A stretch of DNA of 64,000 nt from Dimorphilus gyrociliatus (GCA_904063045.1 CAJFCJ010000009.1:1158942-1222941), one strand, 5' to 3'. Positions 30,724-35,750 are shown, counted from the stretch's first letter. The notes: generated by a model not told the origin, from the sequence alone. Numbers and translations: made by a program.

Positions 30724-32277
30724 TTAATCATTCGAGTTTTCTGTTAACTTAAGTTTACTCATTGCTAATTTAGGACGAATTGCGCTAAGGGCGATTAAGA
30801 GAGCCTCCTGAATAGAAAAAAGAGTTTTTACTTAAAATTATGCATAAATATTTATATATTTAAACTGATTTGAGAAAAAAATTACCTCAGTTCGTATCGT
30901 CCTTGATCCTTGATAAGGACAAACATTTACATAATATTCAAAAAGTTCTCTAGGATCTCCTACTGTTAACTTTTCGTCAGATTCAAGACTTGCCTCAAGT
31001 CCTTTTAGTCCACCGAAAACGATAAGAGCATGTCTAATTTTGAAAGAGATATTATTAAATTCTTAAGCAAATTGGCTAAAATAAAACAAACTTAAAATTT
31101 TCTTCTGGTTCAAAACGATCAATACTATCTCCTTTATCTGATGTTCCAATTACTAAGTCGTAACCGCCCTTATATGGGGATTTAATAAGAACGGATGAAA
31201 GATTTGGAGCAAGCCTAACTGAATAGCCCCAGTATAAATTACCTAATTCTCTTGGTTCATCAGGAGAAACGACAACACCTGTTTTTATTTTTAAAGATCA
31301 TATGAATAGGCAGGCTATTAGACATTTTGTAATACCTCTTGGCTTCTTATTATCCATCGTTGTTTTATCTAATCGAACAGTTACGCGGAATCCTGGATCT
31401 AGCTGTTTGTCAATTCTTACTAATTTCTCTAATCCGACGTCAACTAGAGAGCCTTTATCTTCTTTAACTTTCATTTTAGTAACTACTCCTTCTCTATAAG
31501 TAGCGTCATCTTCACTTCTATAATGATGAACTGAATCTAAAGGATTTAGAAGACCAGCATATTTTAAATCTTCATGAACAGGAAAGAAATTTTTTCGTAG
31601 ATATTGCGGACATTCAAGATATTGAAGAATTCTTGCTAATTGAATGTTACAGTTGGATGTTTTTGTGCTTTTCCCAATGCCTTCAAAAGTTCCTTCAGTG
31701 GTCAAAGCAGCTTTACCAACTTCATCAAATATTATAATTTCATTTACATTAAATATAGCGGCCGAACGGGCAATCTGACCGGCTAAATAGGTTCTTAATT
31801 CAGGTGATTGAGCATTATCTAGTATAGAACCAGGCAAAGCTATGCTGACTGTATAACAATTCTCTGTTAGGAATAAAATTGAATTTTTATACTTTTATAG
31901 ATAATTCTATTTGTTTATACCTTTTTTTTTTAGTTTACTTTCTTCTTCCAATTTATTTATCTGCTCTGTTTCTTCACGTTTCTTTCTCTTTTCTAAGCGT
32001 TTTATTAGTTTTTCTTCTTTCCATTTCCTTTTACGTTCCTTTGCTAATAAATCATCAAGATTGGTTGTTGTCTGATAGCTATTGAGTTATATTAAGAATT
32101 TACCTTCTTTTCTTATTTTTTTCAAATCAGGTTTCGATTCCTATGAAAAAGTTTGTGCGGTTATATTAAAATATTGCATTATCGCTCATTTATTTTTTAA
32201 ATGTCGTTCAAGAAAATTTTTCTTACAACTATATAAATATTTTTAAACGTATTAAAACTCACATTATTTGACGACAT
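30724..32277 (-). CDS. SPOUT1: SPOUT-domain methyltransferase (C9orf114/CENP-32)
   Basis: PGSILDNAQSPELRTYLAGQIARSAAIF, ARILQYLECPQYLRK, LKYAGLLNPLDS, YWGYSVR, IVFGGLKGLE and RTEEALLIAL. Exon 1 is MSSNN|gtgagt. Confidence 0.95.
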
Positions 32278-32377: not shown

Positions 32378-32715
32378 TGTTTTGTAAGGAAGAAGCACTC
32401 TTGAGCAGTAGGCCTACCAAAAAGATAAATTACATCGACATAAGTACTGTGTGTCTTAAAACAAGATTATAAGCTGATATAGAAACCAAAATCTATAAGC
32501 TTCGATTAATTTTTTTATTTATAATAACGCAGTCAAGTCGTTTATTATCTAACTTAAAATTACAATCACATTCGCCTAAGCGTTAAGTAATATATACAGA
32601 AAGTCATATGCTACGTAAAGACGATTAAATCCAATTGCGACAATTTGTCGACATACAACACCAACTGTTGAAATTTTTCGTTTTTTTTTGTTTGTAAACT
32701 ATCCAAAAGTTCTGC

Positions 32716-35344
32716 CTAAATAGGCTTGTATAAAAGTGTCGTTACGTATTTCTTTCTGTATCGATGGGTTGCGCTTAGAACCATTACTCCATCCTGTTTA
32801 TGTTTGAAAAGAGTTATTTTAAAAGTATGTTATCATTAAATACTTATGTGACAATTGTAATCTAACCTTGATTGATAACGCATAAAGGTGATTTAACATA
32901 ACGTGGTTCGGTTCAGGCAACAGAGTTGGCTCACACTAAAAGATAAATAAACAGCAACGTAAACAATATAATTATTGCATATCAGATTTGAAATATAAAT
33001 ATGTTCTGTATAAATTTATAGCATATATTTGTTACTTACATGTACTGGTATTTCCTTATTTAAGATCACCTGTAGTAGGTGAGGGGGTAGTATCGGAGGT
33101 CCACTATGGGAGAAACCATGGGATGAATGTCGGGGGGGAACTTCCTGAGAATAATCACCAGGAGGCGAGCCGGTAACTGATGTTATTTTTAGAGGAATTA
33201 CAAAATAAACATTAGAAGATATTAAATTTTTATATATAGAAAAAAGAAACAAAAGCCAACAGAAGACAGAGAAATACGAAAAAAAAGTACAAACATAATA
33301 AATATAAAAAATGACTCTCTAAAAGCGGCTTGAAAAAATTATGTGCTTGGATTACGTTTTAATAGGCATATAGAGTAAAAAAAAAACACATTCTAAATAT
33401 TTTAAGCTCATAGCATCGTTCTTTTTAGGTTCTTCCTTTTTTATAAACAAAATATAAATAACAAGATAAAAAGTATAAAATTTCTTATTATGAAAACAAA
33501 AAAGAAGGAACGTGCTAAAAAGACTTTAAATATCTAGGGAAAAAAAACAAAATATATATATATATATATATATTAACAATTTCAGAAGTTTTTTTTTGGT
33601 TTTAGGTAAATATTATTCATTCTCTAAAAACAAAGCAATTAGTAAGTCGGGTACCAGAATATACGGGAAGGTGGTTCTTAGCCTCACTGTGTCGCTCTTT
33701 GCCTTTGGATTGTCGGCCATCTACTTCCAATGCATGGAAGACTTCGAAGTCCGAATGTTTGACATTAATCACGTTATTGTTGGTTCCAAAAGGATTTTTC
33801 GTTTTGTCCTACAAAACGATATAGAAAAAACGTGTGACGTTCCAAAGTTAGAAACACAGTCAGAACTAAAAGTTTGGTAATTTAAAATAAAATGTTTAAA
33901 ACAGTCTGGAACAACAAAATGGAGCTACTACACTTTCAAATATTCTCTTAAGCTCTTACAAAAAACTCAATATGTTGCTTTGACCGAAACTGTCTTTCTT
34001 ATTATTTCTACAGTTATTTAAAAAACTTCGATAATAAAAAAGAAATAGATATTTTTTTTTTTTGGATTTTGAAGAAATTAAAGCAACTTTTAATACTTAA
34101 TTGCAGCTGATACTGTTTCTAATGCTCTATTGTTATTAATATAAAACAGTATATAGTAATATAGCTGCGTTCTTTGGTTTCTCTATAATATCTATTAAGT
34201 TTTTATCCGTAACATTTCACCAAAAAAAAAGAATATAGCGATAATAAAGATTAGTGGAATCATAAGCATTAATTGAACAGCTTCTATCAAGCAACAACTA
34301 TTAATAATCGAATTTATTTGGCGTCCTTCTCTACCTTCATCTTTGCTATAATGCCGGCCTGTCCCTCGGTTCTGACCGGAGTTGACACTGTCCGTTGCCA
34401 AAGCTTCAAATACTTCGAAATCTGAAGCTCGAACTGTCACTATATTGTTTTCTGTACCCAAATCACTTTCTGTTTTTTGCTATATGTGCACAATATATAT
34501 ATCTTTAGCTAGACTATGTTAATTGAAAATAACAAAAGGTTTTCTTTTTTATATTCCCTTTCTGAGTCTTATTAAGGGAAAACCTAAATTTCGGAAATAA
34601 TTGAATTACATTAGTAACCTCTTTGGAATCGCATAGCCATTGTCCGTCAACATAAAACTTGTACTGGTGAGTGCCTTCAGGAAGATCTATAATTGCATAA
34701 AAGTCTCCAGTGCTGTTTGGATAAAAGACATATGTGTCAATATTAGTATTGAAGTAACATTCGATCCATGGCGCTAATCTTGAAACTAATAAATATGATT
34801 TCTTATTACCTCTTGACCATAGATATTTTCTTCTTCCAACTATTAAATGAGCCAGAAATGAATACATTTTTTCCTCCGCCTTCCCATTTAAAGACAGTGG
34901 GCAGTTTTTTCTTGTCAATATTCACTGTTGAGCTCAAAGTGCTAGCTCTTACTCTCCTTTTAGGTTCGAAGTCATTCTCTTCAGCAGTCAGGTTCTGTTA
35001 AATAGTATTATTCAATATTTTTTATTCCTTTTATCGTAATAATTTATATAATTAACATGTTTTCTCTGTCTAAAAGCGAAAAAACCGCAATCGGCTTCCA
35101 TTTTGGACAAGTAAAAAAATCTAACCAAATGACATTGGTCTTACGAGTTCTATTCAAATTTTTTTTTTAATCAAAATTTACGCAAAGTAGTGGAGAAAAA
35201 GACGTAAAAATAACGTACTGAATAAGGAGCGAGGTTAGGATGATTTGCTTCACTGTCTACATCTTTCATCCAGTTTTCATCTTCTCTGATAACGCTGTCG
35301 TCTGTCGATTGAGACAGACTTCTTTTACCGCTGTTATTCCCCAT
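32716..35344 (-). CDS. PRKAB: AMP-activated protein kinase beta subunit, with two alternative copies of one exon
   Basis: It starts MGN (myristoylation Gly). The CBM reads PTVFKWEGGGKNVFISGSFN...DLPEGTHQYKFYVDGQW, and the tail reads PPILPPHLLQVILN, CEPTLLPEPNHVMLNHLYALSIK and ATHRYRKKYVTTLLYKPI. Confidence 0.97.
33655..33808 (-). other. PRKAB: AMPK-beta alternative exon B (154 nt, phase 0 to 1)
   Basis: Encodes DKTKNPFGTNNNVINVKHSDFEVFHALEVD...PVYS, a paralogue of exon A. The acceptor is ttttgtag| at 33809 and the donor is G|gtaccc (non-optimal). Confidence 0.8.
34335..34479 (-). other. PRKAB: AMPK-beta alternative exon A (145 nt, phase 0 to 1)
   Basis: Encodes QKTESDLGTENNIVTVRASDFEVFEALATD...KDE. 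The acceptor is tatag| at 34480 and the donor is G|gtagag. Confidence 0.85.
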
Positions 35345-35750
35345 AGTTTCTGAAAAAACTTTATTTTAAACTTACACCAAAAATGTCTCGTCCGACGAGC
35401 AGCGAGTTGGAGGGCGACTGTTCGTTATTTACGATAACACTATATTATCTCAAGTGTACGATATTAAATTAACTATATACCAATTCTATTATATTTAAAT
35501 GCTTAGTTGCATATTGTATAAGTTGTAAAATGTATTCGACATGGGCAGGGAGAGACAAAAAAGTTTGTACTTACACTGATGTAAACAAGTATGGCCACCC
35601 GTCGTCTGCAGGGAGCAAAAACTGGTATAAGCACACGTGATTTCAAAAGTGTTTTACGCAAATTGTAGTGGACACGTGACCTTTGGCGCTTCCAGACTTT
35701 GAGTACTTGGATGTAGAATATTTCTTCAATCAGAGGTATACAATAAGGAA

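Follow-up and report, generated by a model that had tools for sequence, protein, structure and literature searches.

Can a single gene, by exchanging one exon for a tandem copy of it, provide an animal with two versions of the glycogen-binding part of its AMP-activated protein kinase (AMPK), a task for which vertebrates employ two whole genes? This question is raised by a 64,000-nucleotide (nt) stretch of DNA from Dimorphilus gyrociliatus (GCA_904063045.1, CAJFCJ010000009.1:1158942-1222941; hereafter the window, with all positions counted from its first letter), an A/T-rich sequence of about 30% G+C that contains a complete AMPK-beta gene on its minus strand and, within that gene, two adjacent copies of the exon encoding the last part of the carbohydrate-binding module. 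In animal cells AMPK acts as the central sensor of energy, with a beta subunit that both ties the kinase to glycogen and forms the pocket for direct activator drugs. The answer that is favoured here, and held with good though incomplete confidence, is that the two copies (exon A and exon B) represent a tandem-duplicated alternative exon pair in a single AMPK-beta gene, with A as the default and B as a presumably minor or conditional choice. The parts of this answer are not equally firm: the comparisons presented below indicate that the pair is real, old and under selection, and the RNA shows A to be the default, while evolutionary comparison makes it likely that B serves as coding sequence in this animal, and a complete B mRNA, together with a functional difference between the two proteins, is what we infer.

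Two frame-locked copies of one exon

Exon 3 (34619..34712, minus strand, as are all of the gene's features given below) encodes the middle of the module and ends ...CDSKE in phase 0, whereas exon 5 (33040..33176) is entered in phase 1, reads (V)TGSPPGDY and opens the alpha/gamma-binding domain. Between the two lie exon A (34335..34479, 145 nt; acceptor AG 34481-34480, donor GT 34334-34333; peptide opening QKTESDLGTENNIVTVRASDFEVFEALATD) and exon B (33655..33808, 154 nt; acceptor AG 33810-33809, donor GT 33654-33653; peptide opening DKTKNPFGTNNNVINVKHSDFEVFHALEVD), both of which run from phase 0 to phase 1, and which are separated by an intron of 526 nt (33809..34334) found unspliced in a sizeable share of the RNA of one run. 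A preliminary description of the locus had placed two paralogous exons between the exon ending DSKE and the exon starting VTGSPPG, and their coordinates, sizes and phases were confirmed by reading and translation; adjacent, homologous, equal in phase, similar in length and bounded by canonical AG and GT, the two exons have the layout of a tandem-duplicated pair. As the lengths of A and B are both 1 mod 3, the frame is kept only with exactly one of them: a message containing both runs into a stop 11 codons into B, and a message containing neither meets one within exon 5, just as the frame shift proposed for the inclusion or the skipping of both would have it.

When used as tblastn queries, A and B retrieve each other (E of approximately 4e-9) and no other significant match in the window, in which there is one AMPK-beta gene and exactly two copies of the alternative exon. 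Sixteen of the first 30 residues are identical between the two, the linkers that follow have wholly diverged, and over the 30 alignable codons 79% of the synonymous sites differ (a saturated value) versus 31% of the replacement sites. Both exons align with residues 144-175 of human AMPK beta-2/beta-1 chains from the PDB (E 2.5e-5 for A and 1.2e-4 for B), position 146, the seventh residue of each exon, being Leu in A and Phe in B, with Gly147, Thr148 and Asn150 present in both copies; the hairpin is, in other words, of a Leu type in A (DLGTENN) and of a Phe type in B (PFGTNNN), and the earlier mapping of the segment onto L146-G147-T148-x-N150 of mammalian beta1 proves to be correct by this alignment.

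Conservation of the pair among annelids

In a tree of the protein outside the alternative exon, the window AMPK-beta nests in a well-supported annelid clade, and it is among annelids that the same arrangement was encountered. The exon 3 reading frame, when used in a search, gave one fragment, situated on an 83-kilobase (kb) metagenome contig, and walking along this contig exposed two tandem copies of the alternative exon (exon 4). At this Ridgeia piscesae locus (L004), an exon pair of 118 and 124 nt stands between exons 3 and 5, bounded by AG and GT and running from phase 0 to phase 1, with the Leu-type exon (DLGTENN) first and the Phe-type exon (TFGTNNN) second, and its exons match the GenBank protein KAK2190462.1 of that species at 100%. 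A second siboglinid contig (L080) bears the same ordered pair (Leu-type, then Phe/Tyr-type; 118 and 127 nt), so that looking for the pair in related genomes, which had been suggested as a check, has turned it up in two siboglinids, in both of which the two copies have been kept by selection. The DNA identity between these tubeworms amounts to 87% for exon A and to 83% for exon B (with one in-frame 3-nt indel) versus 49-58% for the flanking introns, and for this reason exon B is, as judged from sequence, a conserved coding island that is changing somewhat faster than A. Fourteen residues, Val162, Phe163 and Leu166 among them, are invariant across the four annelid exons.

The Ridgeia protein model itself (L004:16982-17790; 296 amino acids) contains both alternative exons, bridged by translated intron ...STGSKPAALPLYVCAFQPPQMPHVFHCTFQTNIGNTFGT..., as well as an extra 17-residue piece from a 13-kb intron, and appears to be an error of gene prediction brought about by the two exons.

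Closer relatives of the worm are represented as well, since a marine metatranscriptome run (X2) covers 32610-35349 with a strain or sister species that is approximately 1-2% diverged in these exons. Exon A of this strain carries two synonymous changes, and the 107 nt of its exon B that are covered are free of indels and contain a single replacement; in the adjoining intron there are about three substitutions and about four indels. A protein fragment from another run (P0123) contains a further diverged exon A, …NSGHSRGPGRHYSKDEGRDGTP…, and, taken with the strain of run X2, it means that close relatives suitable for comparative tests exist in public data.

Clitellate-like hosts show a different organization, having two separate beta genes with a single exon 4 each (e.g., L018 and L051), one of which is of the Phe type. 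The two genes were seen in host DNA of symbiosis-type metagenomes (L018, L051, L045, L025 and around 50 similar contigs, Ga0056xxx, Ga0126xxx, Ga0209xxx), the Phe-type gene reading KVCNTFGTCNN and the second gene having an A-like hairpin, DSGGQNN, without Leu/Phe-Gly-Thr; these metagenomes may be gutless oligochaete samples. Such two-gene hosts (the gutless-worm-type contigs and Helobdella P0081) resemble the window in that their Phe-type exon, e.g., DKVPNSFGTHNN, groups with the annelid B exons (SH-aLRT, the Shimodaira-Hasegawa-like approximate likelihood ratio test, 92, in an exon tree of 32 columns), and differ from it in having one exon copy per gene and two genes. A tree of the remaining protein left the relationship of the two clitellate genes without resolution.

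Transcripts of the two exons and the explanations they allow

The RNA evidence consists of assembled contigs from three public runs, of which two are metatranscriptomes (including X2) and one, X3, comes from an organism coded A; with most introns at zero depth, X3 has the character of RNA. Among the junctions whose read counts had been proposed as a check on the preliminary description, those joining exon 3 to A (34619-34479) and A to exon 5 (34335-33176) are present in all three runs and that joining the B donor to exon 5 (33655-33176) in X3 only, whereas the junction of exon 3 to B is the one that did not appear. Messages in which A is spliced to B (34335-33808), the routine presence of which had been named as the outcome that would speak against an exclusive choice, were likewise not found in the contigs of the three runs. 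The B-to-exon-5 junction is found in a single contig of 739 nt, which is unspliced from 34364 to 33655 (30 nt of A, the A-B intron and B) and then joined to 33176, and which has a mean depth of 230.7 versus 1594 for the contig with the A-to-exon-5 junction; the 3' part of the intron between B and exon 5 has a depth of 44.9, and the exon 3 to A intron and the gene's other introns have zero. Our reading of these values is that, in about one transcript in eight, the donor of B is used after exon 3 has been spliced to A, and that the A-B intron is then kept. This intron thus appears to resist splicing, a property that the exclusive use of two exons demands, and in these samples productive B mRNA amounts to a minor component at most.

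The reading frame of the retained intron stops at 34197-34195. Read-through from exon A into the intron (34198-34334) would add a tail of 46 residues with a hydrophobic run, LMLMIPLIFIIAIFFFFG, before this stop, which is probably mere T-rich intron sequence.

Several points weigh against B being the coding half of one old, exclusively spliced pair, and they are best considered together. All of the B-containing RNA that was seen retains the A-B intron, with exon 3 already spliced to A, and, because of this splicing and the stop in the intron, such RNA cannot become B mRNA. The exon 3 to B junction (34619-33808) was not found in the contigs of the three runs, and these contigs come from an assembly procedure that drops rare forms and gives mean depth only; as it is the low-coverage side paths that contig assembly removes, exon 3 may still be spliced to B at a modest level. 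A word search with exon B, for which only proteins of 28-89 amino acids were eligible, gave no fragment carrying B, a result that this size range makes uninformative. Competing RNA pairing of the docking/selector kind was sought, and only A/T-rich, low-complexity inverted repeats were met with in the worm, and no pairing linking the relevant introns in Ridgeia, which leaves the docking/selector model unsupported. Finally, the approximately unbiased (AU) test of tree topologies does not reject a duplication of its own for each annelid lineage (p 0.23 and 0.36), and, because it does not, one old annelid A/B duplication is favoured by the exon tree of 32 columns but not established.

The RNA observations would also fit an explanation in which B makes no protein at all, its donor merely competing with that of A and giving an intron-retaining RNA with a premature stop, be it as noise from a relic exon or as unproductive splicing, i.e., a side path that lowers AMPK-beta output. 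The composition of the sole B-containing RNA (exon 3, A, retained intron, B, exon 5), its in-intron stop and its share of about 13% of the summed junction depth at the exon 5 acceptor, along with the missing exon 3 to B junction, are all what would be expected of such an arrangement. A poison or relic exon, however, need not keep its frame, whereas B has kept its frame, its splice sites and all 14 of the invariant residues; its counterpart is conserved as coding sequence between the two siboglinids (83% versus approximately 50% in introns), and B-type sequence is similar to the only copy of this exon in a clitellate beta gene that is expressed. This explanation is, therefore, regarded as improbable, albeit one to be kept seriously in mind.

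Much slimmer is the chance that transcription starts internally, within the A-B intron, and yields a product that is devoid of most of the carbohydrate-binding module and serves as a C-terminal scaffold only. An internal start would account for the roughly fivefold greater depth of the A-B intron and B relative to the intron that follows B (230.7 versus 44.9), with none in other introns, but the contig crosses the unspliced donor of A and takes in 30 nt of that exon, which places the start of at least some of the RNA upstream, exon B has no Met codon, and the conservation of the hairpin and helix residues of B would be left unexplained. Chance resemblance or a duplication artefact of the assembly, in favour of which no point was found, can be dismissed as refuted by the divergence of the copies (only 59% identity in their core DNA), by their occurrence in independent runs and by the equal arrangement in other species, the Ridgeia pair included.

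The alternative exon pair thus being retained as the best explanation, the following course of events is proposed: inclusion of exactly one of A and B would keep the frame, and inclusion of both or of neither would lead to an early stop and the message being discarded; B would be chosen as a minor or conditional option, limited, for example, to a tissue, stage or sex; and this choice would result in a beta subunit that is altered at the tip of the hairpin, on the surface of the helix and in the linker. The only visible safeguard of the choice is the frame-lock, by which both-in and both-out messages carry early stops. Two other devices were considered and rejected for this animal, namely, steric hindrance, given the 526 nt of the A-B intron (it is possible in the clam-like and brittle-star-like pairs described below, with their 68 and 74 nt, respectively), and an incompatibility of U2 and U12 splicing, given that both introns are GT-AG and lack a U12-type donor. 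Since only the A mRNA is complete and, for B, only the 3' junction has been seen, two beta isoforms are, for this animal, something that we infer: of the original proposal of one gene with two isoforms, the frame-locked pair, the coding conservation and the exon swaps in clam RefSeq entries speak in its favour, and the complete B mRNA was not seen in the three runs.

What the swapped segment encodes

Four elements are encoded by the alternative exon: the hairpin that contacts sugar, the final strands of the module, the C-interacting helix, and the linker that extends to the SPP motif. Residues L146, T148 and N150 are what we take, from structural work on beta1, to be sugar contacts of its module. 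The linkers of A and B differ before SPP, as had been noted, and the Ser182-type SPP motif itself is encoded in the shared exon 5. The preliminary description overlooked the C-interacting helix, whose Val162, Phe163 and Leu166 pack on the kinase's alpha-C helix, and in which L166E blunts activation by compound 991 (Xiao et al., PMC3905731). These three residues are invariant in A and B, and the differences between the exons are found adjacent to them (Glu in A versus His in B at position 164; ATDS versus EVDG). Because the exon encodes this helix, its exchange could alter the coupling between module and kinase as much as the binding of glycogen. The comparison with the vertebrate beta1 and beta2 paralogues, which had been said to differ in glycogen affinity, holds in so far as the beta2 module does bind carbohydrate tighter than beta1 does; this is partly via Thr101, however (reviewed in PMC11752127), a residue that falls outside the alternative exon.

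The same exon in other phyla

When metagenome contigs were scanned with a profile built from the four annelid exons, 75 loci came up, and tandem pairs are found among these contigs in more than siboglinids. Frame-locked pairs of 121 and 121 nt with an intron of 527 nt occur in the clam-like contigs L012 and L014, and another one, of 127 and 139 nt, in contig L061; a tandem genomic pair is also borne by the clam-like contig L081, and the two exon-4 versions lie 68 nt apart in a Mercenaria-like genomic contig. In the brittle-star-like contig L019 (4731-5028; closest named protein from Amphiura filiformis), two very similar copies of 112 nt each, Phe-type and then Leu-type, are separated by an intron of 74 nt, a pair which looks like either a younger, independent duplication or one homogenized by gene conversion.

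Named relatives were obtained with a natural full-length mRNA contig (L005) as the query, in which the exon-4 segment begins at residue 153, inside the match to the carbohydrate-binding module (residues 91-173). Between the Mya arenaria RefSeq isoforms X1 (XP_052769806) and X2 (XP_052769807), the alternative exon is the sole difference in the segment compared, and the Mercenaria mercenaria isoforms X1, X2 and X5-X8 (e.g., XP_045171012 and XP_045171053) combine two versions of exon 4 with two versions of exon 3. These bivalve isoforms, which are predicted RefSeq entries, i.e., pipeline models, are alike to the worm pair in concerning the same gene and the same exon, with two tandem versions that are each 1 mod 3 and one of which is present per isoform. 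They differ from it in that the versions are Leu-Gly-Thr versus Leu/Met/Val-Gly-Ser, there being no Phe type, and Mercenaria differs further in its duplicated exon 3, its optional micro-exon and the 68-nt intron between the copies, as opposed to 526 nt in the worm. The Mercenaria exon-3 versions read NGDFFTIVELPEGEHQYKFYVDGNWLHNVNE and HGDFYTIINLPEGEHQYKFSVDGSWQHNASE (P0270, P0073, P0271, P0268, P0269, P0022), and the optional micro-exon, of 12 residues, reads DDIQDRDHKTTV, the combinatorial isoform set being numbered X1 to X8.

In the exon tree, the clam exons group by type within the bivalves, apart from the annelid exons, and because of this grouping the clam duplication is, on sequence grounds, probably separate from the annelid one; both brittle-star copies fall among echinoderm sequences. 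Isoform pairs were also sought among metatranscriptome mRNA contigs, every candidate pair turning out to come from different organisms. The C-terminus of AMPK-beta is nearly invariant across the phyla.

Structure and surroundings of the gene

The reading of the gene from sequence agrees with the spliced contigs of the three runs. It begins with a non-coding 5' untranslated region (UTR) exon, the 3' end of which is at 35575..35604 (donor GT 35574-35573, continuing as gtaagt); the loose end of the contigs at 35349 is, in all three runs, the reverse complement of the window sequence ending at 35575. Exon 1 (35219..35349; joints at 35349 and 34994-35219) carries the ATG at 35344-35342 and the peptide MGNNSGK, the N-terminal Gly of which is of the kind that is myristoylated in AMPK-beta. 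Exon 2 (34810..34994), the joints of which are supported by contigs in three runs, encodes a linker and then opens the carbohydrate-binding module (AMPK1_CBM, PF16561, positions 2-30, E 2.8e-10), and exon 3, joined by contigs at 34712-34810 and at 34479-34619, continues it (positions 34-62, E 1.8e-10), so that the two together cover positions 2-62 of the family with E of about 1e-10; the rest of the module is provided by exons A and B, as follows from the alignment to the PDB beta chains. The C-terminal alpha/gamma interaction domain (AMPKBI, PF04739, positions 3-71) is spread over exon 5, exon 6 (32867..32935; E 3.2e-7) and the coding part of exon 7 (32716..32793; E 8.3e-10), which ends ...TTLLYKPI with the stop codon at 32718-32716, these exons being supported by their joints as well (exons 5 and 6), and the 3' UTR extends to at least 32610 in the contigs. 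With both domains, the Met-Gly start and a predicted Ser108-type site (...MVKS|TGDFY, across the exon 2/3 junction), the protein has the hallmarks of an AMPK beta subunit.

Two observations concern the flanks of the gene. In run X3, exons A, 3, 2 and 1 lie on a contig of 2996 nt that extends for approximately 2.4 kb beyond the junction with the 5' UTR exon; this extension could be a lengthy 5' leader or come from overlap with the neighbour upstream, or else the contig could be chimeric. The downstream neighbour on the same strand (31079-31894, minus strand) encodes a SPOUT-type RNA methyltransferase (Pfam Methyltrn_RNA_3, E 2e-61) and begins less than 1 kb past the AMPK-beta stop codon.

Discussion

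Classical tandem mutually exclusive exons (PMC9013439, PMC9741552; human survey PMC5740500) are adjacent, homologous, equal in phase and similar in length, are conserved in other species and substitute one homologous protein segment for another, in all of which the worm pair is like them; it differs from them in being without an evident competing RNA structure, short intron or U2/U12 clash. No prior description of alternative exons in the carbohydrate-binding module of AMPK-beta was found in the open-access literature, and AMPK-beta is without mention in the main text of the two papers on mutually exclusive exons that were searched. Swaps of this very exon are, however, already present in the RefSeq models of two clams. 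The vertebrate genes PRKAB1 and PRKAB2 likewise offer two versions of the module with different carbohydrate affinity (PMC11752127), but they are two whole genes rather than one swapped exon, and both of them have Leu at position 146.

A broader proposition, advanced only tentatively and with more doubt than belief, is that this exon is a recurrent hot spot for isoform diversification: that annelids, heterodont bivalves and a brittle star have all seen it duplicated in tandem, probably on independent occasions, that in clitellates, as in vertebrates, the versions came to reside in separate genes, and that the Phe-146 version might alter glycogen binding or the coupling of the module to the kinase in particular cells or stages. 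An immediate gain lies in annotation, as the GenBank model of Ridgeia wrongly strings both exons into one protein. Natural pairs of modules whose differences are confined to hairpin, C-interacting helix and linker are, moreover, ready material for tests of glycogen affinity and kinase coupling. Taken as a whole, the finding suggests that many invertebrates may vary, by the swap of one exon, the same segment of the AMPK beta subunit that vertebrates vary by having two genes.

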